Shown: positions 1,414-62,544 of the stretch, piece by piece
How positions within the stretch are numbered: the first letter of the stretch is position 1
Layout of the letters: the number at the start of each line of letters is the position of its first letter
Assembly: GCF_006345805.1 (NCBI RefSeq)
Contig: NC_043022.1
Location: 3,410,001-3,474,000, forward strand
DNA from: Octopus sinensis
Taxonomy: Eukaryota
DNA: 64,000 nucleotides
Direction of reading: 5' to 3'
Made by a program: the position numbers and the translations under genes
The notes under the pieces: generated by a model
The model's database searches: none
What the model was told of the DNA's origin: nothing
What the model saw: the letters and a program-made list of their open reading frames with translations, nothing else

Positions 1414-2218
1414 CGTGTGCGGGTATGTATGAGTACATACATATATGTGTATGTGTGTATACATGTTTGTGTATGTAGACGTTGTAAACGCAGGGGGTTT
1501 ATGTCTACGTATATTTTTTGTGAGAATATGGTTGTGTGTTTATTTTTGTATATTTTTTAATATATTTTTTCTTTTTTCCTTTTCCATGAATTAAAGTAAC
1601 TTCCCTTATATTTAATGGTTTCTGTTTTTTTTCATAGTGTCTGTTGCCATTAATAGCCGACGAGCATGAGTCGTAACTCTTCGTTCCAACATTTGAACCC
1701 TTGAGTACTATAATGACAATTGTTTACTATTTGCTCTAATTTATTAACATATAAAATGATCCTCTATTTCTACAAATATTGAGGTCTCATTCTTTTGTTG
1801 TCATATACTCTTTCTTTTTTTACTTGTTTCAGTCATTTGACTGCGGCCATGCTGGAGCACCGCCTTTAGTCGAGCAAATTGACCCCGGGACTTATTCTTT
1901 GTAAGCCCAGTACTTATTCTATCGGTCTCTTTTGCCGAACTGCTAAGTGACGGGGACGTAAACACACAGCATTGGTTGTCAAGCAATGCTAAGAGGACAA
2001 ACACAGACACAACAACATATACCCACACAATCATATATATATATTATATATATAAACAAATCAAATTGCGATAAAATAAAATAATTATAATCGCTGGCAT
2101 TACTAACACAAGCCATATATTTTTCATATATCAGTACATTAAGGCGAAATATGTGCTAGGAATACAGAAGCTTGATAAATTTAGTGAATTGAAGATAAAA
2201 ACATTTAAACCGGAAAAT

Positions 2219-2287
2219 TCTCAGACTGCAGTTTCTTTCTATTCAGCAAACAAGATATTTATTTGCAGGGAGAATTCTTCAGTGAGA
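2219..2287 (-). ncRNA. Minimal type I hammerhead ribozyme, unit 1
   Basis: Minus strand reads UCUCA-CUGAAGA-A-UUCU..GCAAAUAA/UUGUUUGC..AGAA-A-GAAAC-UGCA-GUC^UGAGA. Stem I is UCUCA/UGAGA, stem III is the palindrome ACUGCAGU, cleavage predicted between 2224 and 2223. Confidence 0.8.
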
Positions 2288-2606
2288 CCCTGTTTTTCTG
2301 GGATCCTAACTCACTAGAAGCATGTGCTTCTAATGAATTACTCTTCCTAACAATCATATCACTGCGCAGACTCCGAACGTCCCGACAATACTAGGGAATT
2401 CTGGTATATCGCCTGGCGCTCATAATTTATCGAGAAATATGTAAACAAATCAAATTGCGATAAAATAAAAATAATTATAATCGCTGGCATACTAACACAA
2501 GCCATATTTTTCATATATCAGTACATTAAGCGAAATATGTGCTAGGAATACAGAAGCTTGATAAATTAAGTGAAATGAAGATAAAAAACATACTAAACCG
2601 GAAAAA

Positions 2607-2677
2607 TCTCAGACTGCAGTTTCTTCTATTCAGCAAACAAGATAATTTATTTGCCCAGGGAGAATTCTTCAGTGAGA
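2607..2677 (-). ncRNA. Minimal type I hammerhead ribozyme, unit 2
   Basis: Same core; here the UUCU/AGAA base of stem II abuts GAAA directly. Cleavage predicted at 2612/2611. Confidence 0.82.
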
Positions 2678-3000
2678 CCCTGTTTTTGGGGATCCTAACT
2701 CACTAGAAGCATGTGCTTCTAATGAATTACTCTTCCTAACTAATCATATCACTGCGCAGACTCCGAACGTCCCGACAATACTAGGGAATTCTGGTATAGA
2801 TCGCCTGGCGCTCATAATTTATCGAGAAATATGTAAACAAATCAAATTGCGATAAAATAAAAATAATATAATCGCTGGCATTACTAACACAAGCCATATA
2901 TTTTTCATATATCAGTACATTAAGGCGAAATATGTGCTAGGAATACAGAAGCTTGATAAATTAAGTGAATGAAGATAAAAACATTTACTAACCGGAAAAT

Positions 3001-3070
3001 TCTCAGACTGCAGTTTCTTTCTATTCAGCAAACAAGATAATTTATTTGCCAGGAGAATTCTTCAGTGAGA
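3001..3070 (-). ncRNA. Minimal type I hammerhead ribozyme, unit 3
   Basis: Same core and stems; cleavage predicted at 3006/3005. Confidence 0.8.
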
Positions 3071-3392
3071 CCCTGTTTTTCTGGGATCCTAACTCACTAG
3101 AAGCATGTGCTTCTAATGAATTACTCTTCCTAACTAATCATATCACTGCGCAGACTCCGAACGTCGACAACAATACTAGGGAATTCTGGTATATCGCCTG
3201 GCGCTCATAATTTATCGAGAAATATGTAAACAAATCAAATTGCGATAAAATAAAAATAATTATAATCGCTGGCATACTAAACAAGCCATATATTTTTCAT
3301 ATATCAGTACATTAAGGCGAAATATGTGCTAGGATACAGAAGTTGATAAATTAAGTGAAATGAAGATAAAAACATTTACTAAACCGGAAAAT

Positions 3393-3463
3393 TCTCAGAC
3401 TGCAGTTTCTTTCTATTCAGCAAACAAGATAATTTATTTGCCCAGGAGAATTCTTCAGTGAGA
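3393..3463 (-). ncRNA. Minimal type I hammerhead ribozyme, unit 4
   Basis: Same core and stems; cleavage predicted at 3398/3397. Confidence 0.8.
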
Positions 3464-3740
3464 CCCTGTTTTTCTGGATCCTAACTCACTAGAAGCATGT
3501 GTTCTAATGAATACTCTTCCTAAATAATCATATCACGGCGCAGACTCCGAACGTATACATATATATGACAGGCTTCTTTCAGTTTCCGTCTACCAAATCC
3601 ACTCGCAAGTCATTGGTCGGCCCAGGGCTATAGCAGAAGACACTTGCCCAAGATGCCACGCAGTGGGACTGAACCCGGAATCATGTGGTTGGTTAGCAAG
3701 TTACTTACCACACACCCACTCCTGCGCCTATAAATATATA

Positions 3741-3964
3741 TTTAAGAAACACACAAAAGCCGTTAGATTCACTTCAACATTTAAATTTAATTTGCCAAAA
3801 TATTTTCATCGCTTTGAGACAGGGACTTGTTCACTGACAAAATTCCATGATGCAGCACAGAATTTTGTCAGTAAACAGGTCACGGTCGCAAAGCGATGAA
3901 AATATTTTGGCAAATTAAATTTAAATGTTGAAGTGAATCTAACGGCTTTTGTGTGTTTCTTAAA
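3741..3964. repeat. Long inverted repeat (~105-bp arms, ~15-nt loop)
   Basis: TTTAAGAAACACACAAAAGCCGTTAGATTCAC... mirrored by ...GTGAATCTAACGGCTTTTGTGTGTTTCTTAAA; the outer ~78 bp are perfectly complementary. Confidence 0.9.
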
Positions 3965-4499
3965 TGGCTTATAAACACCTTCCACGCTGCAATTGTTTTC
4001 ATTCCAGCACACGATCTCAGATCAAGTCACTCGCTATGCAAGTACATCTCTGTAATAATATATATATATATTCATCTCTTGGTATTTTAGCTAATCTTTT
4101 GTTTGAAATTTAAATTACTCACTCGGTGGTATGTTAATGAAGACAAGCAAATCTCAAAGTAAACAATTTGTCACAATCAATCCCAAACAGATAATAAATC
4201 TATCTATCTATCTATTTCCCTGTCTGTCTCTCTATACTCACACACACATATTAAACTTTAAACAGACATGAAGAGAGTAGATAGATCATTGATGAACTCT
4301 TGAGTATAAATGAAAGGACTTCAAGAAACAACAGATTGTTTGATTAACTGACTGATCTAACAACCAACTGCTTTGTTGGCTGGTTAAATACGTGACTAAT
4401 TGGCTCACGGTAAAGAAGTGAAATTGAACCATTACATGTATTTACTATTGGTGTAATGACCCTCCTAAGATAAACTTTAAACCTTCTCTCTTATTTCAG

Positions 4500-4577
4500 A
4501 ATGTATTTCTACCCCAAGGCTACCCAGAAAGTGTGAGTGAAGACTACCTAAGCTACCAGATATGGGACAGTATTCAG
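4500..4577 (+). CDS. RUSF1: RUSF1-like exon (NVFLPQGYPESVSEDYLSYQIWDSIQ)
   Basis: ttatttcag acceptor, gtaggt donor, phase 0/0. Confidence 0.9.
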
Positions 4578-7500
4578 GTAGGTTTATAATCTTTATATAT
4601 AAAACTGAAGTTGTGTGTGTGTCTGTCTACTCCGATTTAGATTCCTAACTACTCCCACATTTTGCGGTGCAGTTTAACCAAAAGCGGGTATCTTATAGTC
4701 GTGATTCATATCGAGCCCTTCTGGGTATTAGCGTGCGTCTACGATGAGTCTACAATTAAAAAAAAAAATTACAATAATTTTTCTGCATTTTTAATGCATT
4801 TTTTGCTCGGTTTATATAAGAGAAGTAACTCTCTAAAAATGCTTATATAGTTATTTCCCTTACAAACCTGAGCAACGCCGGGTGATACTGCTAGTTACTG
4901 ATAATTTTTGACATACATGCCGGATTAACCATTAAGCAAAATAAGCATGTGCTTCAAGCATCGAGAGAAGCATAGCATCACAAAAATGGTAAATGGTTTA
5001 CAGCACAAAAGAAATCACTTTAACCTTTAGTACACTTAGGTGAATTGTATTGCTTGGTCAGTTTTCTCTCCTGTAACTGAAGATACATTGTGTGTTCAAT
5101 AAAGTGTTACAAGATTTAGATTAAAAATTCTCAGAACATTCCGGACAACCTAATAGGTACCACAATTTGATGTAGGTCACATCACTATTAGAAGCAACAG
5201 GTTTACTAATAAAATTTGTGGAAATTTTGTTGACTGATAAAGTCAAATTGAAACTGGCGTCAGTTTAATATTTCTACAAAGAAGTACTTTTCTCGTATGT
5301 GGGTGGTGGAAAATTTTCAGTGGTTATTTGGAACAAAGACAGCAGTAGGAGAGGGTGATAGATGCATCTGTGCAATGTTATTTTAAAGTCTTTGTCACCT
5401 ATTTTTAGATATTAACTTTAGAAAAAAATAAATAAATGCAATACTGTGATCAGTTGCTTGTTAGCCACAATCACAATAACAGCAGACATCGGCAACAATA
5501 GCTGACTCTGAAATGCGAATAAGTAAATAGACGCTTTCATTTTCAAAAATATTTTCAGCTTTTAGTGTGTGTGTATAAAAATTATCTGGTAGTATTTAGT
5601 GGTTGACATATTCATCTTTATCACCATTTTACCCTCTCGTTACCATATTTCTGTTGAGATGCTCTGTGTTTCTTTTAATTAATTTTAAATATAACAAAGA
5701 ATTTAGTAAAATAACTTAGTTATCATTAAGCTAGTGCTAGGAACATAAATTGTGACTAAGGTTTGGTGGAAGATTTTAATTCAAAACTTTTGAAAACAAG
5801 ACATTTGTACTTCAGAGCCAGAAGTGGTTTCAAAAGGGGTTAATGACAGAAGTCCAAATACTACAGAGCCAGAGGCAGTTTCCAAGGGGTTAATGCCTTA
5901 ACCCTTTTGTTACCATATTCCTGTTGAGATGCTCTGTGTTTCTTTCAATTAATTTTAAATATAATAAAGAATTTAGTAAAATAACTTCATTAAAATAAGC
6001 TCGTGTTAGGCACATAAATTGTGACTATGGTTTGGTGGAAGATTTTAATTCAAAACTTTTGAAGACAAGACATTTGTACTTCAGAGCCAGAGGCGGTTTC
6101 AGCTGGGTTAGTATCAAAAGACTTAACATCTGTTTTCCATGCTAGCATGGGTCAGATCAGTAGTTCTCAATCACTTTTTACCTATGGACCTCTTTGATTC
6201 CTATTTTACTCAGGGGTGGGGGTCACTTGTCGTCATTTGGTGTTTTAAAAAATCCCATTATATTTTTATAATTAAATATCATCAGGAATTGTATAAAAGA
6301 TATATTGATAAATTATTTTGTGTATTGAAGAAATATAACAAGTTTATTGCTCATAAATTTTAACGTCAAAATCTTATATGGACCTGCAAGGGTCATGAGG
6401 ACCCTTGGTGGTAACAACTGGTTTAGATAGCTTCACAAGAACCATGAAGCCATAAAACTGCACAAACTTCCAATGTCTGCTCTGGTGTGGTTTCTAAAGC
6501 TGGATGCCCTTCTTCAAACTAACCATTTTATAAAGTGTATTGGATGCTTTTTTAAGTGGCACAAAAGCACTAGTAGGGTCACCAAATAACTTGCAAGACA
6601 AAGGCCCCTCAACCGAGTAGGGGTACAGTATTGAGGGAATATAAGGCGGCGAGTTGGCAGAAATGTTAGCAAGCCGGGCGAAATGCTTAGCGGTATTTCG
6701 TCTGCCGCTACGTTCTGAGTTCAAGTTCCGCCGAGGTCAACTTTGCCTTTCATCCTTTCGGGGTCGATTAAATAAGTACCAGTTATGCACTGGGGGTGAT
6801 ATAATCGACTTAATCCGTTTGTCTGTCCTTGTTTGTCCTCTCTGTGTTTAGCCCCTTGTGGGTAGTAAAGAAATAGGTATTTCGTCTGCCGTTACGTTCT
6901 GAGTTAAAATTCCGCCGAGGTCAACTTTGCCTTTCATCCTTTCGGGGTCGATTAAATAAGTACCAGTTTCACACTGGGGGCAATATAATTGACTTAATCC
7001 GTTTGTCTGTCCTGTTTGTCCTCTCTGTGTTTAGCCCCTTGTGGGTAGTAAAGAAATAGGTATTTCGTCTGCCGTTACGTTCTGAGTTAAAATTCCGCCG
7101 AGGTCAACTTTGCCTTTCATCCTTTCGGGGTCGATTAAATAAGTACCAGTTTCACACTGGGGGCAATATAATTGACTTAATCCGTTTGTCTGTCCTGTTT
7201 GTCCTCTCTGTGTTTAGCCCCTTGTGGGTAGTAAAGAAATAGGTATTTCATCCGTCTTTACGTTCTGAGTTCAAATTCCACTGAGGTCGACTTTGCCTTT
7301 CATCCTTTCGGGATCGATTAAATAAGTACCAGTTTCACACTGGGGGTGATATAATTGACTTAATCCATTTGTCTGTCCTTGTTTATCCTCTCTGTGTTTA
7401 GCCCCTTGTGGGTAGTAAAGAAATAGGTATAGTTTTGAGAGAAATAGGTTTATGCCTGAAACACTGTTATTTTGTCTGTAGAACCATTGTCCTGATTACT

Positions 7501-10500
7501 TTAGATTAAAGAACTTAGAATTCCATATTATGTTAATCCTGTGAATGACTTAAAACTGCATCCAGTAGTGGAACCCTTATGGGAGTTCCAGGGTTTTGAG
7601 GAGAGGGAAACCCTCTATTAGCCCCTATTGTTCCCAGGGTCCCAGTAATGGATGAAATAGCATGTAATCACCTGAGGAAGGCAGGGTATGCTGAAATCAT
7701 GGAATGCAGCATGTCTTATAAAAACCTTAAAAGAGAGGGTATTTTAGACTGAAACAAACTCAACTAAATTCTCAGAATTCTTTTGGTTTACCATTCTGAA
7801 TAAATGTGATTAATTTTAAAAGCGTTTTAAGATTTTTACATGAAGACTTGTATTCTTTATAATTGTTTTATATTGTTTTTTTTGTTCTTTTTAAACAATT
7901 TCTCCAGGCTTTTGCCAGCAGCATCACAGGAACATTGGCCACACAATCAGTTCTAAAAGGAATCGGTGTTGGCAATGAGCAGGCGACAGTCTTGGGAGCA
8001 ACATTAACTTGGCTACTTAAAGGTCGGATTTTTTATTCTAAAGCTTCTCCTTTTGAATAATTACCATTTGCTTTATTATTTTCATGTCTAATTAATATTT
8101 ACCTCTTCTGAGGCAGCAAGCTGGACGGGCAAACTGCTTAGCGGCGTTTCATCCATTTTTACATTCTGAGCTCAAATTTCAGTGAAGTCAACTTTGCCTT
8201 GCAACTTTTTTTTGGGGGGGGGGTCAACCTTTTGGGGTTGATAAAATAGTTACTATTTTGAGCACTGGGGTCGATCTAATCAACTTACCCTTTCTTCTGA
8301 GCTTGCTGGCCTTGTGCCAAAATTCGAAACCAATATTTTCCTCTTCTAATTATAATCAGGGTTTTAATTGACTCAGCTGGTCAAATACCAGCATTGACTG
8401 ATTGGACTAAACAATATGAATGATTAGTCATCCTTGACTGATTGTATTCTTTGATTTTTGTACTTGTCTAGTTCCAGAATCAGCATAATTTTGATTAAAG
8501 GAATGCCATCCATGACCATCCTGTCTTTTTATACCTAGAAGCATCCAGTCCACTCAGTAAAGTGGTTGGCATTAGGAAGGGCATCCAGCTTCAAAACCCT
8601 GCCAAAACCCATGCACATTTATAAATATGTACTCACACACAGAGGAAATTTTACAAGTTTCTGACCTCATCTCTGTCTTCTATAATATAATAATAATAAT
8701 GAAATTATTGTATACAGTGCTCAGGTGCACCACAGCTTGTCAGAAAGTGCGTATAAAGTATATGCAGTAATGTACAAATGTCTGGAAAGCGAACAATGTA
8801 TGAGTCAGATACATGCTTGTGTGTGTATGGAGGGGAGAAAATCAGGTGTAGTGTTGTTGAATCTCAGGAAGCATAGAGGTTTCGAAGGATGCAGTGCTCC
8901 GACAACCAACAACCGATGCCGGCAGTTTGTTCCATGCGTCAGCAACTCTTAGCCTGAAAAAATGTTTCCTGAAGTCATGGGAGCTGTGCTGTTTTCTGAC
9001 TTTGTAAACATGTCCACGGGTGTTAGACAGACGGACTCAGGAAGCATGGAAGTTTTGAAGGATGCAGGGCTCCGACAACTAACAACCGATGCCGGCAGTT
9101 TGTTCCATGCGTCAGCAACTCTTAGCCTGAAAAAATGTTTCCTGAAGTCATGGGAGCTGTGCTGTTTTCTGACTTTGTAAACATGTCCACGGGTGTTAGA
9201 CAGACGGACTCAGGAAGCATGGAAGTTTTGAAGGATGCAGTGCTCCGACAACTAACAACCGATGCCGGCAGTTTGTTCCATGCGTCAGCAACTCTTAGCC
9301 TGAAAAAATGTTTCCTGAAGTCATGGGAGCTGTGCTGTTTTCTGACTTTGTAAACATGTCCACGGGTGTTAGACAGACGGACTCAGGAAGCATGGAAGTT
9401 TTGAAGGATGCAATGCTCCGACAACTAACAACCGATGCCGGCAGTTTGTTCCATGCGTCAGCAACTCTTAGCCTGAAAAAATGTTTCCTGAAGTCATGGG
9501 AGCTGTGCTGTTTTCTGACTTTGTAAACATGTCCACGGGTGTTAGATGGGTGGAGTTTGAAAAGGTGCTCAGAGTTGTTGTTTGTACGATGGTTGATAAT
9601 TTTATGGGTGTCTGCCAAGTCAGCTGCCAGACGTCGGAGTTTCAATGTGTCCATGCCCAGGGAAGTAAGGTGTTCAGAATATGGCAAATGCCTGATGGAG
9701 GGTATTCTTTTGGTTGCACATCGCTGAACAGCTTCCAGATAAACACTGATAGACACATACACAATTACATGTAAACACACACACACACATGTATACACAG
9801 AAACACACACACACATGTATACACAGAAACACACACACACATGTATACACAGAAACACACACACACATGTATACACACACACACATACACACATGTATAC
9901 ACAGAAACACACACACACATGTATACACAGAAACACACACACACATGTATACACAGAAACACACACACACATGTATACACAGAAACACACACACACATGT
10001 ATACACAGAAACACACACACACATGTATACACAGAAAAACACACACACACACATGTATACACAGAAACCACACACACACAACATGTATACACAGAAACAC
10101 ACACCACACATGTATACACACAGAAACACACACACACACATGTATACACAGAAACACACACACACATGTATACACAGAAACACACACACACATGTATACA
10201 CAGAAACACACACACACATGTATACACAGAAACACACACACACATGTATACACAGAAACACACACACACATGTATACACAGAAACACACACACACATGTA
10301 TACACAGAAACACACACACACATGTATACACAGAAACACACACACACACATGTATACACAGAAACACACACACACATTACCCTATCAGCTCCTCTCACCC
10401 AGTCAGAATCTCTTCATTCAAATTTGTTATCTCACAGAAGGAATGAGGCTGTGCTTCTCAGTCAAAGACTCCCTTAATTTTAACACCCTAACCATTTCAT

Positions 10501-17842: not shown

Positions 17843-19085
17843 TTGTGTGTCTGTGTTTGTCCCCCCCAACATCGCTTGACAACTGATGCTGATGTGTTTA
17901 TGTCCCCGTAACTTAGCAGTTTGGCAAATGAGACCGATAGAATAAATACTAGGTTTACAAAGAATAAGTCCTGGGGTCGATCTGTTTGACTAAAGGCAGT
18001 GCTCCAGCATGGCCGCAGTCAAATGACTGAAACAAGTAAAAGAATAAAAGAATATATTTATGTAGGCGCAGGAGTGGCTGTGTGGTAAGTAGCTTGTTTA
18101 CCAACCACATGGTTCCGGGTTCAGTCCCACTGCGTGGCACCTTGGGCAAGTGTCTTCTACTATAGCCTCGGGCCGACCAAAGCCTTGTGAGTGGATTTGG
18201 TAGACGGAAACTGAAAGAAGCCTGTCGTATATATATATATATATATGCATGTGTGTGTTTGTGTGTCTGTGTTTGTCCCCCTAGCATTGCTTGACAACCG
18301 ATGCTGGTGTGTTTACGTCCCCGTCACTTAGCGGTTCGGCAAAAGAGACCAATAGAATAAGTACTGGGCTTACAAAAGAATAAGTTCCGGGGTCGAGTTG
18401 CTCGATTAAAGGTAGTGCTCCAGCATGGCCACAGTCAAATGACTGAAACAAGTAAAAGAATAAAAGAATATATTTATGTTAGAAATCATTATTTGTTTGT
18501 TTTTTGTATCTTATTTTTGTTGTTGTTGTTCTCTTTCTTTTTCCAGTCAATTGTTGGTATTGCTGGGGCCTCCACACGTGCCGCCCTCTCCCAACATCAG
18601 GCTCGCAGAAATAACATGGCTGATGTATCAGTGAAAGATAGCAGCCAGGTGAGTGTTGGTTTCTTTTCTTTTTTAATTTTTAAATGCACAGGGCCCTCAC
18701 TGGGGCCGATGCCACAAAAACAACAACAAAAAAAAAGAAGCCCCCAGTACATTCTGTAAAGTGGGTGACACTAGGGAGGGCCTCTAGCTATAGAAACCAT
18801 TCCGAAGCAGACCCCGGAATGGAGCACGGTCCTTAGACTGATCAGATCCTGTCAAACCGTCGAACCCATGCCACCACGGAAAATGGACATTAAATTCACT
18901 TTTACTTGTTTCAGTCATTTTGACTGTGACCATGCTGGAGCACCACCTTTTAGTGGAAGAAATCGACTTATTCTTTGTAAGCCTGGGATTTATTCTACCA
19001 GTCTCTTATGCCAAACCGCTAAGTTACAGGGATGTAAACACACCAACATCAGTTGTCAAGTGATGGTGGAGTGACAAACACAGAC

Positions 19086-19127
<42 letters not shown>

Positions 19128-22081
19128 TATATATATATGTATATATATACATACATGTGGAGGTGCAATGGCCCAGTGTCTAGGGCAGTGGACTCGCGGT
19201 CGTAGGATCACGGTTTCGATTCCCAGACCGGGCATTGTTAGTGTTTATTGAGCGAAAACACCTAAAAGCTCCATGAGGCTCCGGCAGGGGGTGGTGATCC
19301 CTGCTGTACTCTTTCACCACTCTTTCTCTCACTCTTTCTTCTGTTGGCTTGCTTGCTTAGCCAGCGCGGTGGCATCATTTGAAGGCTAAAACAATGTGAA
19401 GCGCATTGTGACCAGCGATGTGTAGCAACATCTGATAGCCTGGTTGGTCACGGTGATATATATACATATATACGACAGGCTTCTTTCAGTTTCTGTCTAC
19501 CAAATCCACTCACAAGGCTTTGGTCGGCCCAAAGACTATTGTGGAAGACACTTGCCCAAGGTGCCACACAGTAGGACTGGACCCGGAACCACATGGTTGG
19601 GAAGCAAGCTTCTTACCACACAGCCATGCCTGCTGAAGACTTTTAAATGTTTTCCTAAAGGCATGTCTGTATGGTGAGATGTTTGCTTTCCAACCACATG
19701 GTTCCAGGTTCGGTCCTACTGCATGGCACCTTGGGCAAGTGGCTTCTGCTATAGATTTGGACTGAGCAAAGCCTTGTCAGTGGATTCAGTAGACGGAAAC
19801 TGAAAGAAGCCCATCATGTATATATCATCATCATTTAATGTCTGTTGTTCATGCTGGCATGGGTTGGACGGTTTGACTGGGCTGGCACACTGGAAGGCCA
19901 CACCAGACTCCAGTCTGATTTGGCCTGTTTTCTAAGGCTGGATGCCCTTCCTAATGCCAACCACTTTGGCAACAGAACTTTTAAATACGAAAGGCAAACA
20001 CACATGTATACACAAGCAGAAATATACACATTATTTGTGTATATAAATGGAGAAAGAGAGAGAGAGAGAGAGAGACAAAGAGGAAGAGAGAGAGAGACAA
20101 AGAAGAAGAGAGACAAAGAGGGAGAGAGAGAGACAAAGAGAGAGAGAGGCAAAGAGGGAGAGAGAGAGACAAAGAAGGGGAGAGACAAAGAGGGAGAGAG
20201 AGAGAAAGAGAGAGAGAGACAAAGAGAGAGAGAGAGACAAAGAAGAAGAGAGACAAAGAGGGAGAGAGACAAAGAGGGAGAGAGAGAGACAAAGTGAGAG
20301 AGAGAAACAAAGAGGGAGAGAGAAAGAGAGAGAGGAAAGTTAATTCAAGCAGCATCCAAAAATTCTAGTTTTTGTTTTAATATATCTTTTGCTGAGCTCT
20401 TAAGTTAGAGGGACATAAACACACCAACACCAGCTGTCGAGTGGTAGTGGTGGACAGACACAGGCACAAAGATACACACACATACATGATGGGCTTCTTT
20501 CAGTTTCCATCTACCAAATCCACTCACAAGGCTTTGGTCAGCCTGAGGCTATAATAGAAGAGACTTGCCCAAGGACTGAACCTGGACCCATGTGATTGGG
20601 AAGTGAGCTTCTTACCACACAGCCATGCCTGTGCCTATAAATACAAATGAGGTTGTCATGGCTGGAAAGCATTTGGTTATAGGCCAGCTTAATGGGGGAA
20701 AGCTGGCAGAACCGTTAGCATGCAGGGCGAAATGCGTAGCCGTATTTCGTCTGCCGTTACGTTCTGAGTTCAAATTCTGCCAAGGTCGACTTTGCCTTTC
20801 ATCCTTTCGGGGTCGATAAATTAAGTACCAGTTACACACTGGGGTCGATGTAAGCGACTTAATTCGTTTGTTTGCCCCCTCTGTGTTTGGCCCCTTGTGG
20901 GTAATAAAGAAACATATAGGCCAGCTTAATCCAGTTTGATCCGGAGCTAAACATCAACAGTATTACATGTGTAGTGATGCTACTGTGTAAGGTTCAGCGC
21001 GCATGCACAGAATGGGACTACTTCCGGGTGGCCACCGGAAGTCTTCCCCATGCGCATGTGCGGGAAACTGACCCCTAAGGCACAGACCACTCATTCACTC
21101 TCTCTGGCGCTTTCAGCCCTCGTGAACAGACGTGCATTTGGTAGTCTCTGAGAACTCTACACCGGCTTAGCGACGGACCACATCGAATCAACTTCAATCA
21201 ACCAACAAGAAGCAGTACAAAGATTCGGCTGTCGTTTCCCCTCAGAAATTCGTACACCATCACGAATAATAAACAACAATTTGCTGTCTTTCACCGATAA
21301 CCTGACTTCGTCTGTTATATCTAACTAAATTGTATGTGACGGGATCGGATCGACACCCTTTCAGTGATACCGATTCCAGATCCTGTTACACATGCTCCTA
21401 CAAAATCCCTCCCTCAACCCACCCCTTTCCCTCTCTTCCTTGGTCTAAACATTGCTTCTTTCTTTCTTTCCAGGAAACTCTTGTGAATGTAACAGCTCTC
21501 CTCTTCAACCTTATTTTAACTCCATTTGTTTCAAAATACAAAGAGTAAGTTGACGGAATGATTCTTTAACACATATTTACAATTATTACAATTACTGGCA
21601 GTATCGCCCGGCGTTGCTCGGGTTTGTAAGGGAAATAACTATATAAGCATTTTTAGAGAGTTACTTCCCTTATATAACCCGAGCAAAAATCATTAAAAAT
21701 GCGGAAAATGATGGTAAATTTTTTTAAAATCGTAGACTCATCGTAGATGCACGCTAATACCCAGAAGGGCTCGATATGAATGATGACTATAAGATACCCG
21801 CTTTTGGTTAAACTGCACCGCAAAATGTGGGAGTAGTTAGGAATCTAAACCAGAGGAGACAGAGTCTCACACACACAACTTAAATTTTATATATAAAGAT
21901 TACAATTATTACATATATAGGCGTAGGAGTGGCTTTGTGGTAAGTAGCGTCCTTACGAACCACACGGTTCTGGGTTCAGTCCCACTGCGTGACACCTTGG
22001 GCAAGTGTCTTCTACTATAGCCTCGGGCCGACCAAAGCCTTGTGAGTGGATTTGGTAGACGGAAACTGAAAGAAGCCCGTC

Positions 22082-22127
<46 letters not shown>

Positions 22128-25100
22128 TAATCCAAACAAGAAAGCACAAAAAACACAACAATGTGAGGACGTGGAACAAATATAGTATTATTGGACGCTC
22201 AGGAAAGAATGGTCTGGTTGGTCACGTGATATATATATACATGTGGAGGTGCAATGGCAGCGGACTCGCGGTCGTAGGATCACAGTTTCGATTCCCAGAC
22301 CGGGCATTGTGAGTGTTTATTGAGCGAAAACACCTAAAACTCCACGAGGCTCCGGCAGGAGCTGGTGACGATCCCTGCTGTACTCTTTTAACGTTTTGAG
22401 CGGAGCTTTTCGTCGGAAACATAGGAGAAGGAAAGATCCAGAGAAGGGAAGACAGAGGAAAAAAAATCGCCAACGGTACACACGAGGTCATGTGTATGTG
22501 TATATGTCTGTGTGTCTGTGTTTGTCCCCCCAACATTGCTTGGCAACCAATGCTGGTGTGTTTACGTCCCCGTCACTTAGCGGTTCGGCAAAAGAGACCG
22601 ATAGAATAAGTACTGGGCTTACATACGAATAAGTCCTGGGGTCGATTTGCTCGACTAAAAGGTGGTGCTCCAGCATGGCCACAGTCAAATGACTGAAACA
22701 AGTAAAGGAGTATACGTGTGTGCGTACATGTATATCTATATCCTTTTATTCTTTCAGTTGTTTCGGTCATTTTGACTGTGGCCATGCTGGAGCACTGCCT
22801 TTACTCGAACAAATCGACCCAGGACTTATTCTTTGTGAGCCTAGTACTTATTCTATCGGTCTCTTTTTGCCGAACCAATAAGTTACAGGGATGTAAACAC
22901 ACCAACATTGGTTGTCAGGTGATGGTAGGGGGACAAACACACAGATTCACACATACACATATATGAAGGGTTTCTTGCAGTTTCCGTCTACCAAATCCAC
23001 TCACAAGGCTTTGGTTGGCCCATGACAAGTAAAGGGGACTTGACCAAGGTGCCGCACAGTGGGACTGAACCTTAAACTATGTAGTTGGGAAGCAAACTTT
23101 TTACCGCACTTTTGTGTGTTTGTATTTTTATAGAAAGTTGTTTAGGAGACCCAAAAGCACAAGGTATTAATATCACTTATGCATACCTTCCCTTCTTGGG
23201 ACACAAAACCCTACTTGTGAAGACCTGTTGAGGCAAGTGAAAATCAAAATCAAAATCAAAATCAATTTACATCAATGGAAATTGTAGCTGTGATACCAGT
23301 GCCGGTGGCACATAAGAGAACCATCCGAACATGGCCGTTGCCAGCGCCACCCCAAACTGGCCTCCGTGCCAGTGGCACGTAAAAAGCACCATCCGATCGT
23401 GGCAGTTGCCAGCCTTGACTGGCCTCCGTGCCGGTGGTACATAAAAAGCACCATCCGATCGTGGCCGTTTCCAGCCTCGCCAGGCCTCCGTGCCGGTGGC
23501 ACATAAAATGCACCATCCAATTATGGCTGTTTGCCAGCCTTGCCTGGCACCTGTGCCGGTGGCACGTAAAAAGCACCATCCAATCGTGGCAGTTGCCAGC
23601 CTTGACTGGCCTCCGTGCCGGTGGTACATAAAAAGCACCATCCGATCGTGGCCGTTTCCAGCCTCGCCAGGCCTCCGTGCCGGTGGCACATAAAATGCAC
23701 CATCCAATTATGGCTGTTTGCCAGCCTTGCCTGGCACCTGTGCCGGTGGCACGTAAAAAGCACCATCCAATCGTGGCAGTGCCAGCCTTGACTGGCTCCG
23801 TGCCGGTGGTACATAAAAAGCACCATCCGATCGTGGCCGTTTCCAGCCTCGCCAGGCCTCCGTGCCGGTGGCACATAAAATGCACCATCCAATTATGGCT
23901 GTTTGCCAGCCTTGCCTGGCACCTGTGCCGGTGGCACGTAAAAAGCACCCCATCCAATCGTGGCAGTTGCCAGCCTTGACTGGCCTCCGTGCCGGTGGTA
24001 CATAAAAAGCACCATCGATCGTGGCCGTTTCCAGCCTCGCCAGGCCTCCGTGCCGGTGGCACATAAAATGCACCATCCAATTATGGCTGTTTGCCAGCCT
24101 TGCCTGGCACCTGTGCCGGTGGCACGTAAAAAGCACCATCCAATCGTGGCAGTTGCCAGCCTTGACTGGCCTCCGTGCCGGTGGTACATAAAAAGCACCA
24201 TCCGATCGTGGCCGTTTCCAGCCTCGCCAGGCCTCCGTGCCGGTGGCACATAAAATGCACCATCCAATTATGGCTGTTTGCCAGCCTTGCCTGGCACCTG
24301 TGCCGGTGGCACGTAAAAAGCACCATCCAATCGTGGCAGTGCCAGCCTTGACTGGCCTCCGTGCCGGTGGTACATAAAAAGCACCATCCGATCGTGGCCG
24401 TTTCCAGCCTCGCCAGCCTCCGTGCCGGTGGCACATAAAATGCACCATCCAATTATGGCTGTTTGCCAGCCTTGCCTGGCACCTGTGCCGGTGGCACGTA
24501 AAAAGCACCATCCAATCGTGGCAGTTGCCAGCCTTGACTGGCTCCGTGCCGGTGGTACATAAAAAGCACCATCCGATCGTGGCCGTTTCCAGCCTCGCCA
24601 GGCCTCCGTGCCGGTGGCACATAAAATGCACCATCCAATTATGGCTGTTTGCCAGCCTTGCCTGGCACCTATGCCGGTGGCACGTAAAAAGCACCATCCG
24701 ATCGTGGCCGTTTGCCAGCCTTGACTGGCCTCCGTGCCGGTGGTACATAAAAAGCACCATCCGACTGTGGCCGTTTGCCAGCCTCGCCTGGCACGTAAAA
24801 AGCACCCACTACACTCATGGAGTGGTTGGCATTAGGAAGGGCATCCAGCCGTAGAAACACTGCCAGATCAGACTGGAGCCTGGTGCAGCCTTCTGGCTTC
24901 CCAGACCCCAGTTGAACCGTCCAACCCATGCTAGCATGGAAAGCGGACGCTAAACGATGATGATGATGATGAAATATATATATATATATATTCTACTTCC
25001 ATTTCAGGTTAGTTTTCTATTTGTTCACCTTCTTCACAATGTTACATTTATACTCCAACTATTCTGCTATCAAATCTGTTACCATGGAAACCATCAACCA

Positions 25101-57388: not shown

Positions 57389-57547
57389 TCAGGCAACGTA
57401 CACAGAGTCAACGCTCCTCGAGAGATGAACTGGATGTGAGGGACTGCGAATCAATGGTTTCCTTGGTATCCGAGCCAAGGCCCGTGGTATCTGGCTGAAC
57501 TCAGGCCGGTCCTTAGGATCGAAACCCCAACAATCCATGAGGATATC
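57389..57547 (-). CDS. KSR: KSR-like last coding exon ([52 protein letters not shown])
   Basis: atttgcag acceptor; TGA at 57391-57389. Confidence 0.9.
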   Translation of the reverse strand, partial: DILMDCWGFDPKDRPEFSQIPRALARIPRKPLIRSPSHPVHLSRSVDSVYVA

Positions 57548-60500
57548 CTGCAAATAGATAAATGGAAGGGCCTCAAATATTTATTTCTTTATTACCCACA
57601 AGGGGCTAAACACAGAGGGGACAAACAAGGACAGACATAGGGATTAATTCGATTACATCGACCCCAGTGCGTAACTGGTACTTAATTTATCGACCCCGAA
57701 AGGATGAAAGGCAAAGTCGACCTCGGCGGAATTTGAACTCACAACGTTGCACCATTGAAATACCGCTAAGCATTTCGCCCGGCGCGCTAACGTTTCTGCC
57801 AGCTCGCCGCCTCAAATATTGATGAACAATCAGCTGTGTGTGTGTGTGTTATTGCATATAAGTTGGTGTTTGTGTATACAAGTGCAAATATATATAAAAG
57901 GCTGAATGTGGAAGCAAATTAATAATAAAAAAAGATTACAAAAAAACCAAAACAAATGTAGAACTGTAACTTGATATCAATGCAAAAGCTAAGTAAGGAT
58001 TGAACATGCAACCTTTGGCTTTGAAGCCAGATGCTCTGAAACATTGAAACAAACTTTGCAGATATTTGTCTTTGAATGTGTCATGTTTTAATGTGTGTGT
58101 GTGTGTGTGTGTGAGACAAACATACAAATTGCAGACAACTACACACACACACACATATATATACACATCACATGAACACACACACACGTGTATCACACAT
58201 GCACGCATCTTACAAGCACAAATACTTATCGCCCCCGCCACCCCCATTACACAGAAAGAGAGAATACGCTCATAAACCCCAATACCAGAGGGGGAAGAGC
58301 GAGGACCCCCCCCCCCAATGACAAACGTAGACCAATTCTGTTGTTGAAGCCAGTAATGCTTACTGCAGTGGAGGCGCAATGGCCCAGTGGTTAGGCAGCG
58401 GACTCGCGGTCATAAGATCGCGGTTTTGATTCCCAGACCGGGCGTTGTGAGTGTTTATTGAGCGAAAACACCTAAAGCTCCACGAGGCTCCGGCAGGGGA
58501 TGGTGGTGATCCCTGCTGTACTCTTTCACCACAACTTTCTCTCACTCTTTCTTCTTGTTTCTGTTGTACCTGTATTTCAAAGGGCCGGCCTTGTCACTCT
58601 CTGTGTCACGCTGAGTATCCCCGAGAACTACGTTAAGGGTACACGTGTCTGTGGAGTGCTCAGCCACTTACACGTTAATTTTACGAGCAGGCTGTTCCGT
58701 TGATTCGGATCAACCGGAACCCTCATCGTTGTAACCGACAGAGTGCTTCCATCCACATACATACATATGCACACACACACGTGTATCACACATGCACACA
58801 TCTTACAAGCACAAATACTTATCACCCCCCCCCCCCCCATTACACAGAAAGAGAGAATACGCTCATAAACCCCAATACCAAAGGGGGAGAGAGGGGGAAG
58901 AGTGAGGCCCCCCCACCCCCCATGACAAACGTAGACCAATTCTACAGTCTGAACTCACCTTGACATCCCTGGAAGTAATGATATGACACAAAGACTGTTT
59001 AATCCCTCGTCCCACCTGCCAAATAATGCTCTCTGGAGGCTGCTGTTTGAAAGGCCATTCCCCACAAAGCAGTTCGTACCAAACCGTTCTGCAAGAAAAA
59101 AAGGAATTCACGGATGAAAAACACAAGAAAAATAAAATATTTCTCAAAGCAAAGAAACAACAAATATTTCAGAAAGGAACTGAGTCGTTGCTTAACCCCA
59201 GGTCAAGTTCTGATTAAGTAGACCCCTAATCAAACAAGCGTGGGTCAGGTATCATCATCATCATCATTTAGCGTCCGCTTTCCATGCTAGCATGGGTTGG
59301 ATGGTGCAACTGGGGTCTGGGAAGCCAAAAGGCTGCACCAGGCCCAGTCTGATCTGGCAGTGTTTCTACAGCTGGATGCCCTTCCTAACGCCAACAACTC
59401 CATGAGTGTAGTGGGTGCTTTTTACGTGCCACCAGCACAGGTGCCAGGCGAGGCTGGCAAACGGCCACAGTCGGATGGTGCCTTTTACGTGCCACCGGCA
59501 CAGGGGCCAGTCGGGGCGGCGCTGGCAATGGCCCGATCGGATGGTTCGCTTATGATCCACAGGCACTATGGATTAAAAACAAGAAAAATAAAATATTTCT
59601 TAAAGCAAAGAAACAACAAATATTTCAGAAAGGAACTGAGTCGTTGTTTAACTCCAGGTCAAGTTCTGATTAAGTAGAACCCTAATCAAACAAGCGTGGG
59701 TCAGGTATGGAGCCATGTAAAAGCACCTAGCATGGTTTCTATGGCTGGATGCATCAGGAAGGGCATCCAGCTGTAGAAACCATGCCAAATCAGACTGGAG
59801 TTTGGTGCAGCCCCTCAGCTTACCAGCATGGACAATGGATTGTTAAATGATGGTGATGATAATTTATATGTGCATGTGGGTGCACACACAGGCAGGGGCA
59901 GTTTCAATTTAAGGAGCACCATGAAGGGGAGACAGCCTCTACTTACCCAAATGCGTATGTGTCGGATTTCTTAGAGAAAGGCAGTTCCGTGTTAGCTGCC
60001 TGGGTGTTCCCTGCTTGTAATGACCTCATAATCTCTGGAGATAAGTAGCACAGCCAACCGAGAGGAATTGCCAGGCAATCTCCTTTCCTGAAACAAAAAT
60101 AGGGAGAACAATTACACAACTGCAGAGACACAATTTTCTGGCCATAATAACAATAACAGCAACAACAACAACAACAATAATAATGGATGGATGGAAGCAC
60201 TCCGTCGGTTACGACGATGAGGGTTCCGGTTGATCCGATCAACGGAACAGCCTGCTCGTGAAATTAACGTGTAAGTGGCTGAGCACTCCACAGACACGTG
60301 TACCCTTAACGTAGTTCTCGGGATATTTAGCGTGACACAGAGAGTGACAAGGCCGGCCCTTTTAAAATACAGGTACAACAGAAACAGGAAGTAAGAGTGA
60401 GAGAAAGTTGTGGTGAAAGAGTACAGCAGGGATCACCACCATCCCTTGCTGGAGCCTTGTGGAGCTTTTTTAGGTGTTTTTGCTCAATAAACACTCACAA

Positions 60501-62484
60501 TGCCCGGTCTGGGAATGAAACTGCGATCCTATGACCGCGAGTCCGCTGCCCTAACCACTGGGCCATTGCACCTCCACACAACAATAATAATAATCTTTAC
60601 CACTCTAGGCATAATACCTGAAATTTTGGGGGAGGGGGGGCAGTCGATCAGATTGACTCCAGTACGCAACTGGTACTTAATTTATTGATCCTGAAAGGAT
60701 GGAAGGCAAAGTCGACATCATCATCATCATCGTTTAACGTCCGTTCTCCATGCTAGCATGGGCTGGATGGTTCGACCGGGGATCTGGGAAGCCAGAAGGC
60801 TGCACCAGGCTCCAGTCTTGATCTGGCAGTGTTTCTACAGCTGGATGCTCTTCCTAACGCCAACCACTCCGAGAGTGTAGTGGGTGCTTTTTACGTGCCA
60901 GGCGAGGCTGGCAACGGCCACGGTCGGATGGTGCTTTTTACAGAGAAGCCAGTCAAGGCGTAAGAACGTAAAAACAGACGGAATACCACTAAGTATTTCA
61001 CCTGGCATGCTAATGTTTCTGCCAGCTCGCTGCCTTAATAATAATAATAATATAATAATGGTTTCAAATTTTGCCACAAGGGCAGCAATTTTGCAGGAGG
61101 GGCTGAATCGATTACATCGACCCCAGTGTTTAACTGGTACTTATTTTACTGACCCTTGAAAGGATGAAAGGCAAAGTCGACCTCAGTGGAATTTGAACTC
61201 AGAACATAAAGACGAACAAAATACTACGAAGCATTTTGTCCAGTTTACTAATGATTCTGTCACCTTATAATAATAATAATAATAATAAACTTTTCTACTA
61301 AAGGCACAAGGTCTGAAATTTGGGGCGAAGGGATTAGTTGATTACATTGACCCCAGTGTTTCACTGGCACTTAATTTATCGACCCCAAAAGGACAAAAGG
61401 CAAAGTCGACCTCAGCAGAGTTTGAACTCAGAATGTAGTGATGGGCAAAATACTGCTAAGCATTTCGTCCAGCATGCAAACTATTCTGCCAGCTCACCAC
61501 CTATTTCTTTGGAGCAACATGAAATAAAGGATCTGGCTCAAGGACACAACACGTCGCCATGAAACGAACCCACGACCTTACAATTGTAAGCCGGAAACTG
61601 TAACCACTAAGCCATGTGCCTTCATATAATAATAATAATAAACCTTTCTACTAAAGGCAAAAGACCTGAAATTTGGTGGGAAGGGGATTAGTTGATTACA
61701 CCAACCCCAGTGTATAACTGGTACTTATTTCATTGTCCCTGAAAGGATGAAAGGCAAAGTCGACCTCGGCAGAATTTGAACTCAGAACATAGCGGCAGAT
61801 GAAAATACTGCTAAGCATTTTGCCCAACATGCCAACAATTCTGCCAGCTTGCCGTCTTCAGCATTCTAGTAATAATAATAACTTCTTGCTTTGATGTAAT
61901 GCCAGAAATCTAGGGCCAGTGGGTCAATGGATCAGTTGACTAGGTCTACCCCAGTATTTGATAGCTAGTTTATTTTATCGACCATGGAAGGCTGGAAGGC
62001 AAAGTTGCCACTCGTGGGATTTGAACATGGAATGTGAAGAACTGTAAATGTAACACATGGAATTTTTTCTGATGTTCTAATGATTCTGCCACTGAGTTTT
62101 TTTGGGTTGGTGGAAATATTGTTAGATTGACCTTAGATGCACAGATCAGTAGGTGTTTAATGAGAGAGAGAGAGAGAGAGGATGGAGGAAGAGAGAAATA
62201 GGGAAAGAGTGGGACAAAGAGAGGAAGAGAGAGGACAAAAGATAGACAGAGAGAAAGAGATAGAGACAAGAGAGAGGACAAAAGATAGACAGAGAGGTGA
62301 GAGAGGGAAGAGAGAGGGAGAGAGAGAGAGAGAAGCTGGGAGCTTACCTATTTCCATGACACCATTTAGTAAGATTGAATAAACCAAAATCAGTGATGAC
62401 AACTTTGCCGGTCTCTTCCCAAAATATATTTTTAGTCTTCAAATCTTTGTGTATGATTCCCCTTGCATGTAAGTACCCCATGCC
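57389..62484 (-). CDS. KSR: Kinase suppressor of Ras (KSR)-like kinase, last four coding exons (subdomains VI-XI)
   Basis: The 567-nt spliced frame reads [129 protein letters not shown] and IIWQVG are diagnostic for KSR rather than RAF. Confidence 0.92.
58368..58755 (+). mobile_element. Long-form tRNA-derived SINE in a KSR intron
   Basis: GTGGAGGCGCAATGG head and CCATCCA tail; a near-identical copy lies on the - strand at 60185-60577. Confidence 0.82.
58959..59088 (-). CDS. KSR: KSR-like exon ([43 protein letters not shown])
   Basis: tcttgcag acceptor, gtgagt donor, phase 2/0. Confidence 0.92.
59947..60087 (-). CDS. KSR: KSR-like exon ([26 protein letters not shown]...KKSDTYAF)
   Basis: ttgtttcag acceptor, gtaagt donor, phase 2/2. 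Confidence 0.92.
62348..62484 (-). CDS. KSR: KSR-like exon ([45 protein letters not shown])
   Basis: tttgcag acceptor, gtaagc donor, phase 0/2. Confidence 0.92.
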
Positions 62485-62544
62485 CTGCAAACAAAACAAG
62501 AAGAAAACAAGGGGGAAAATAAATAACTAAAAATAACAAACTTC

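Follow-up and report, generated by a model that had tools for sequence, protein, structure and literature searches.

A minus-strand hammerhead motif repeated in a tandem array of ~392-bp units, a probable non-LTR retrozyme or Penelope-like element-derived repeat within a SINE

The stretch of Octopus sinensis DNA analyzed here (contig NC_043022.1, positions 3,410,001 to 3,474,000; 64 kb, referred to as the window) contains a tandem array in which every unit carries a hammerhead ribozyme motif on the minus strand. We interpret this array, with a probability of about 75%, as a hammerhead-bearing retrozyme lacking long terminal repeats (non-LTR retrozyme) or as a repeat derived from a Penelope-like element (PLE), inserted in an intronic short interspersed nuclear element (SINE) in antisense orientation to the host gene. 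Judged from its sequence, the ribozyme is built like the minimal hammerheads of PLEs, and the features that can be checked in silico lend partial support to a non-LTR retrozyme-like array. Whether the hammerhead of the array cleaves today is close to an even bet.

In all four units the minus strand reads UCUCA-CUGAAGA-(42-nt helix II)-GAAA-C-UGCA-GUC^UGAGA, and cleavage is predicted after C17 at positions 3398, 3006, 2612, and 2224, giving spacings of 392, 394, and 388 nt (Table 1). The initial annotation of this DNA had placed a minus-strand motif at these sites, 388-394 nt apart, with a 5-bp stem I and a palindromic stem III (ACUGCAGU), and we recovered all of these elements in every unit. 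The core CUGAAGA ... GAAA ... GUC is invariant in the four units and corresponds to the C3-U4-G5-A6-N7-G8-A9 and G12-A13-A14 positions of the hammerhead core with an N-U-H cleavage site, around which three helices can be drawn with helix I open. Helix I is formed by UCUCA/UGAGA (5 bp), helix II by UUCU/AGAA (4 bp), a 5x5 internal loop and an 8-bp hairpin (GCAAAUAA/UUGUUUGC) that includes one G.U pair, and helix III by an A-U and a C-G pair with a UGCA loop. The core had previously been called intact, which is true of its single-stranded bases, but the G10.1-C11.1 pair is absent and the Rfam threshold is missed; likewise, the 8-bp stem II hairpin that had been described is present, but it is parted from the core by the 4-bp helix and the internal loop. 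At positions 10.1 and 11.1 an A.A mismatch precedes UUCU/AGAA in three units, while unit 3 has AGAA instead of AGAAA ahead of G12, leaving one unpaired A after A9 followed by a U-A pair.

The statistical strength of the motif was assessed in the two ways that the initial annotation had suggested, a search with the Rfam model Hammerhead_1 (RF00163, gathering score 34 bits) and a structural descriptor. With E-value reporting, the model matched all four units from end to end, but at 25.4-28.2 bits and thus under the 34 bits of the gathering score, with E-values of 2.6e-4 to 2.2e-3 in a 1.8-kb search and of at least 0.009 in the whole window (best 0.009; about 0.07 for two others listed). Rfam with default thresholds gave no match in the window; no hammerhead match was found there outside the array, and Hammerhead_1 was the only ribozyme family matched. 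The descriptor combined a 5-bp helix I, CUGANGA, a helix II of at least 4 bp with one unpaired base tolerated per side, GAAA, a helix III with the 15.2-16.2 pair and a 2-6-nt loop, and a UH cleavage site. It matched the window four times, always within the array, and had no match when the window was dinucleotide-shuffled 300 times. In random sequence of the composition of the array it matched once in 51 Mb (~2e-8 per nt), or with a chance of ~1.5e-5 for one 392-bp unit when both strands are counted; the random sequence gave no match with a palindromic helix III. The four copies of the motif are duplicates and count as one independent observation, and isolated motifs of this strength are expected to arise by chance in a multi-gigabase genome; hence, it is the motif and its context combined that make the case. 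As positive controls we used retrozyme hammerheads that have been validated by experiment, taken from the supplementary data of PMC7229834. Those of mussel, coral, and axolotl Ax330 passed the strict descriptor, while axolotl Ax353, which has U.U at the base of helix II, passed only a relaxed version (4-bp stem I, 3-bp helix II), where the layout of its mismatch is that of the array motif.

Variation among the units is also distributed unevenly with respect to the predicted structure. Six of the 72 columns of the motif are variable and these lie in the helix II internal loop, the hairpin loop and the A-run beside G12, whereas no change is seen in core, cleavage triplet or helices among the four units. 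Only 1 of 53 constrained columns varies, through an arbitrary gap placement, compared to 5 of 19 unconstrained columns in the motif (one-sided Fisher P=0.004) and 35 of 343 columns in the remainder of the unit (P=0.03). The avoidance of core and helices is suggestive, considering that it comes from four related copies only.

The array itself was found by Tandem Repeats Finder as a single block with a period of 392, 3.9 copies, 94% matches and 3% indels, in agreement with alignment and BLAST and with the four tandem units of ~390 bp described earlier. Mean column identity in the alignment of the units is 92%, and the consensus is 96.5-98.5% identical to the four units by BLAST. Differences between units amount to 12 substitution columns and 24 indel columns, the latter mostly single-base and many of them within short homopolymers, and this pattern could reflect either real divergence or long-read consensus error. 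The GC content is 34-35%, the longest open reading frame (ORF) encodes 55 aa, and the 84-codon stop-free frame of the unit consensus had no match in a collection of 5.8 billion proteins. A hairpin located ~40 nt upstream of each hammerhead (Table 1) is recognizable by alignment in unit 1 too. Non-LTR retrozymes are AT-rich, non-coding tandem repeats of ~150-450 bp (PMC7229834), and the array has head-to-tail units within this size range, one type I hammerhead in each, a GC content below 50%, no coding capacity and no LTR. Retrozyme families are further marked by many genomic copies, by linear and circular unit-length RNA that is predicted to be stable and strongly self-paired, and by self-cleavage (PMC7229834). 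The earlier assignment to a retrozyme family is partly supported: unit size, type I motif, low GC, the lack of ORF and LTR, the pure tandem insertion and the antisense orientation agree with it, but the Rfam score and positions 10.1 and 11.1 do not.

BLAST and alignment showed that the array is flanked by the two halves of one ~430-bp tRNA-derived SINE copy, presumably an octopus SINE, of a family with ~20 copies in the window. Intact copies of this SINE continue through the (TA)n/(TG)n core at which the array interrupts the host copy, and since the flanks are halves of one copy, the array represents a discrete insertion into an older element. The inserted block consists of repeat units end to end without unique terminal sequence, inverted ends, LTR, primer-binding site, polypurine tract or poly-A tail, and a tRNA scan of the array region was negative. 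At its upstream end the block extends 156 nt beyond the first cleavage site, and at its downstream end 171 nt beyond the last one. As the array does not end at cleavage sites, the inserted copy did not originate from a ribozyme-processed linear monomer, and its ends fit a circle or an uncleaved multimer as the template that was copied. A plus-strand exon with a canonical AG acceptor and GT donor, located at 4499-4577, together with an exon at ~7908-8021, encodes a RUS-family (PF04884) protein that is RUSF1-like; the best database proteins are 76-78% identical and the sole named one is from a gastropod. The array is found just upstream of this internal exon on the opposite strand and most probably lies in an intron of the RUSF1-like gene, so that the ribozyme strand is antisense to the gene, as had been annotated. 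Matches to the exons were 54-78% identical, with none closely related, and provided no orthologous locus for an empty-site comparison.

Folding calculations point to different behavior of single and neighboring motifs. For a single motif the hammerhead fold was calculated at -12.6 kcal/mol compared to a minimum free energy (MFE) of -18.2 kcal/mol, because in the latter the core CUG is bound by CAG in the palindrome. For two motifs, a double hammerhead with a helix III of 8 bp formed by the ACUGCAGU palindromes, and with stem I strands swapped between motifs, reached -42.1 kcal/mol, as compared to -42.7 kcal/mol for the unconstrained dimer and -36.4 kcal/mol for two separate monomers. In a 486-nt transcript over two neighboring motifs, the pairs of the inter-motif helix III had probabilities of 0.7-1.0, and the double fold (-113.8 kcal/mol) was 14 kcal/mol below two monomeric hammerheads (-99.4 kcal/mol), the MFE being -122.8 kcal/mol. 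Unit-length circles were predicted at -87 to -91 kcal/mol (z ~-2.0) with 61-62% of bases paired, which is only moderately better than shuffled sequences. Overall, these thermodynamic models, which predict stability rather than catalysis, favor action in multimers and an inactive resting fold in monomers, both of which are known behaviors of hammerhead RNAs (PMC4209133). The initial annotation had stated that retrozymes self-cleave as dimers, and this applies to those of amphibians, but invertebrate retrozymes, including that of mussel, cleave as monomers (PMC7229834).

Based on these features we propose that a minus-strand read-through transcript, probably made by RNA polymerase II (Pol II), would fold each hammerhead. 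RNA polymerase III (Pol III) would be stopped by T4-T5 runs in every unit: a T4 run is found six bases past each predicted cleavage site (GUC^UGAGAAUUUUCC; 3386-3392 in unit 1) and T5 runs follow. The Pol III promoter of the host SINE does point into the array in the ribozyme sense, and read-in from it was considered as a source of multimers; we rejected this, as the T4/T5 runs past each cleavage site would terminate Pol III and the promoter would yield at most one motif. Folding of the monomer could be transient, with a helix III of 2 bp and a UGCA tetraloop, while two neighboring motifs could pair through their palindromes into the 8-bp helix III favored by the energy calculations. Cleavage after GUC would then free RNAs of 388-394 nt with 5'-OH and 2',3'-cyclic phosphate ends, which an RtcB-type tRNA ligase may circularize by analogy with the mussel and axolotl retrozymes. 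Finally, a PLE reverse transcriptase (RT)/GIY-YIG endonuclease could copy circles or multimers into cDNA longer than one unit and insert it at AT-rich nicks.

Several results weigh against the interpretation as a retrozyme or PLE-derived repeat. All four Rfam scores stay below the gathering score; no unit has the G10.1-C11.1 pair that closes helix II, which PLE minimal hammerheads keep highly conserved (PMC4209133), and the helix II of 42 nt is unusually long and broken by the 5x5 internal loop. In the 486-nt transcript the MFE is 9 kcal/mol lower than the energy of the full active double fold, and the pairs of stem I reach a probability of just 0.025, with a 9-bp helix between GAGAAUUUU, just past the cleavage site, and GAAGAAUUCUC as its competitor. 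BLAST with the 392-bp consensus detected no copy beyond the array in the window, and no relatives of the unit were found in metagenome, viral, and protein collections. Neither a YxDD motif nor a GIY...YIG motif of PLEs was detected in the six frames of the window, indicating that an autonomous partner is not nearby. A target-site duplication, which exceeds 4 bp in retrozymes when visible (PMC7229834), is unreadable in the (TA)n microsatellite. PLE endonucleases favor AT-rich or, in some clades, (TA)n targets (PMC8557442; PMC11167929), and the insertion site was accordingly considered as evidence for PLE mobilization; this argument is weakened by an unrelated SINE that occupies the same (TA)n tract of two other copies, which means that the target does not identify the mobilizing enzyme.

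In a rival reading the repeat descends from a hammerhead-bearing element but has ceased to cleave at a useful rate, and is now an inert intronic insertion; the lack of G10.1-C11.1, the break in helix II and the strength of competing folds would account for the loss. The sub-threshold Rfam score, the state of positions 10.1/11.1 (A.A mismatch, or bulge and U-A), alternative folds more stable than the active one and the low in vitro activity of PLE minimal hammerheads (PMC4209133) all agree with such a loss, yet none of the four units has lost a helix, GUC or any of the 11 strictly conserved core bases, variation being confined to the loops, and an axolotl retrozyme hammerhead with U.U at the same position is active, especially as a dimer (PMC7229834). 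We regard a dead descendant as less likely than not. It is unlikely that the array consists of tandem copies of the pLTR (the non-coding terminal repeat) or of the tail of an autonomous PLE, inserted without its ORF. The open 5-bp helix I, the large helix II, the unpaired base after A9 and the palindromic helix III are those of the PLE minimal type rather than of canonical retrozyme hammerheads (PMC4209133; PMC7229834), and a 2026 preprint places vertebrate retrozymes as sisters of PLE pLTRs, but the window holds no RT or GIY-YIG motif and the block consists of repeat units only, where direct repeats flanking an ORF for RT and GIY-YIG would be found in a PLE. If retrozymes derive from PLEs, the distinction between retrozyme and PLE repeat may be one of degree.

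It is still less probable that an ordinary dispersed tandem repeat, for example a transposon-borne one, acquired a hammerhead-like string by chance. Matches of 25-28 bits are to be expected in a multi-gigabase genome, which is the reason for the Rfam cut-off of 34, and tandem arrays with periods of 140-400 bp make up ~8% of the window; on the other hand, the per-unit chance of a descriptor match given above is small and becomes lower with the palindrome, neither Helitron-type (TC...CTRR) nor inverted termini nor unique end sequences are present, and variation avoids structural positions. A Helitron/Helentron-borne satellite was considered specifically and rejected, since the junctions pass straight from the SINE (TA)n into the units without 5' TC, 3' CTRR or terminal hairpin. 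Bivalve non-autonomous Helentron/Helitron elements carry dispersed short satellite-like arrays with unique left and right ends; the present array differs from them in consisting of units throughout, in lacking TC/CTRR, and in carrying a ribozyme motif. Very improbable in our view is an assembly artefact by which the array grew from one or two genuine units. Single-base indels, many of them homopolymeric, account for two thirds of the variable columns, as in an uncorrected long-read consensus, but substitutions in 12 columns and a distinct junction with each SINE half argue for real copies, and the motif itself would remain even if the copy number was wrong.

Compared to known systems, the architecture of the array motif is, as read from sequence, closest to the PLE minimal hammerheads. 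Shared features are a 4-5-bp helix I without a defined loop 1, an enlarged helix II that a single unpaired base separates from A9, and the palindromic 15.2-16.2 pair and loop 3 (PMC4209133), and the PLE motifs are likewise expected to act as dimers (PMC4209133). In contrast to the array, they are located in terminal repeats on either side of an RT-endonuclease ORF; no such ORF exists in the 64 kb. According to the 2026 preprint, vertebrate retrozymes derive from PLE terminal repeats. The retrozyme Rtz Mg353 of the mussel Mytilus galloprovincialis (PMC7229834) resembles the array in its non-coding 350-390-bp units with 37% GC, in having one type I hammerhead per unit, in a helix III of 2 bp with a palindromic tetraloop (ACGCGCGU in mussel, ACUGCAGU in the array), in the lack of canonical loop 1-loop 2 contacts and possibly in the phylum of its host. 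However, the mussel motif has a plain 4-bp helix II (GUCU/AGAC) with the G10.1-C11.1 pair, and its monomer cleavage (~0.1 per min) and abundant circles are proven, whereas for the array both are predictions. The axolotl Rtz_353/HHR_Amex2 (PMC7229834) also has a mismatch where helix II starts (U.U, compared to A.A in the array) and a 2-bp helix III with a palindromic tetraloop, and its activity is therefore a precedent for the A.A mismatch. Its dimers cleave far better than its monomers, as the energies calculated for the array would suggest here. Rtz_353 differs in being a vertebrate family of ~60,000 copies and in its short helix II, partial loop-loop contacts and unrelated sequence. By BLAST the array unit has no significant similarity to the mussel, coral, or axolotl retrozymes, and none outside the core for mussel. 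Such dissimilarity is usual between species-specific retrozyme families. Like the array, newt satellite 2 and Schistosoma Sm-alpha are short tandem repeats whose type I motif has a palindromic helix III, but they have a canonical 4-bp helix II and conserved loops and score above the Rfam threshold. Rfam RF00163 was built largely on these two.

The array would not open a new class, since the known range of retrozymes already extends from cnidarians to amphibians and includes bivalve molluscs; what sets its hammerhead apart, as judged from the sequence, is the absence of G10.1-C11.1 and the long, interrupted helix II. Our literature search found no paper joining cephalopods or octopus with retrozymes or genomic hammerheads. 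If the array is confirmed as a retrozyme, it would extend hammerhead retrozymes to a lineage without reports in the searchable literature, provide a natural ribozyme that tolerates the loss of G10.1-C11.1 and a large helix II insertion, and offer a clean insertion of a pure multimer with ends unlike the cleavage site, which bears on the proposed copying of circular or multimeric RNA by PLE RTs. More tentatively, we speculate that the motif is an active natural hammerhead variant without G10.1-C11.1 and with a three-part 42-nt helix II, which would define a mollusc or cephalopod lineage of PLE-minimal-type retrozymes. Under this doubtful scenario the variant would directly link PLE terminal repeats to free-standing retrozymes as an intermediate, and the (TA)n cores of an abundant SINE would serve as landing sites of the lineage.

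Table 1. Positions of the tandem array, its hammerhead motifs, and the halves of the host SINE in the window.
Feature	Positions	Strand	Basis or remark
Tandem array, ~392-bp units x 3.9, head-to-tail	2048-3554	- (ribozyme sense)	Tandem Repeats Finder, alignment, consensus BLAST
Unit 1	3554-3163	-	Alignment
Unit 2	3162-2769	-	Alignment
Unit 3	2768-2381	-	Alignment
Unit 4, truncated at ~330 nt	2380-2053	-	Alignment
Hammerhead motif, unit 1	3392-3464	-	Rfam RF00163 25.4 bits; descriptor
Unit 1 motif, stem I strands	5' 3463-3459; 3' 3397-3393		
Unit 1 motif, core CUGAAGA	3458-3452		
Unit 1 motif, helix II	3451-3410		
Unit 1 motif, GAAA	3409-3406		
Unit 1 motif, palindrome ACUGCAGU	3406-3399		
Unit 1 motif, C17	3398		
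Hammerhead motif, unit 2	3000-3071	-	C17 3006; Rfam 25.4 bits; descriptor
Hammerhead motif, unit 3	2606-2678	-	C17 2612; Rfam 28.2 bits, best of four
Hammerhead motif, unit 4	2218-2288	-	C17 2224; Rfam 25.5 bits; descriptor
Predicted unit-length products	3397-3006 (392 nt); 3005-2612 (394 nt); 2611-2224 (388 nt)	-	Positions of GAAACUGCAGUC
Hairpin, ~15 bp, near-perfect, UUCAUUAGAAGCA CA UGCUUCUAGUGAG, unit 2	3090-3123	-	Inverted self-hits of consensus, fold
Hairpin, ~15 bp, further copies	Unit 3 2696-2729; unit 4 2307-2340	-	
Host SINE, 5' (tRNA-related) half	3555-3745	-	Ends ...CCUGUCAUAUAUAUGUAUA at upstream array junction
Host SINE, 3' half	1803-2052	-	Starts UAUAUAUAAUAUAUAUAUAUG at downstream array junction

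The (TA)n core of the ~430-bp SINE is a recurrent target, as 3 of the ~20 copies are split there: the copy at 1803-2052 and 3555-3745 by the hammerhead array, and the copies at 21910-22706 and 18900-19633 by an unrelated ~300-bp SINE-like element (22095-22470 and 19130-19461), of which more copies are present near 35.0, 50.4, 58.4, and 60.5 kb. Abutting the 5' end of the host SINE is a 226-bp palindrome without spacer (3740-3965), whose two 113-nt arms are 93% complementary and which may be a foldback or MITE-like (miniature inverted-repeat transposable element) element.

In the metagenome collection, the string CTGAAGA-N30-55-GAAACTGCAGTCTGAG matched two contigs. We judged these to be chance matches within host DNA that is unrelated, as they represent one shared site that is non-tandem and has no stem I, and a scan of the viral collection with the core-plus-helix III string gave nothing. 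The two contigs, both from JGI (L001, 314-370; L002, 663-719), have in common a eukaryote-looking locus with adjoining tRNA-like SINE sequence.

Other tandem arrays of the window gave no ribozyme matches; they include four copies of 173 bp at 8863-9546, which repeat the C-terminal coding tail of a non-LTR RT, four copies of 183 bp of SINE-like sequence at 6692-7430, and 23 units of a 62/187-bp repeat at 23357-24792. By eye only, we also noted exons of a KSR-like protein kinase at 57392-62526 on the minus strand, and fragments of a Tigger/pogo-like transposase (helix-turn-helix and DDE-region peptides) in several frames of the plus strand at 2-966.

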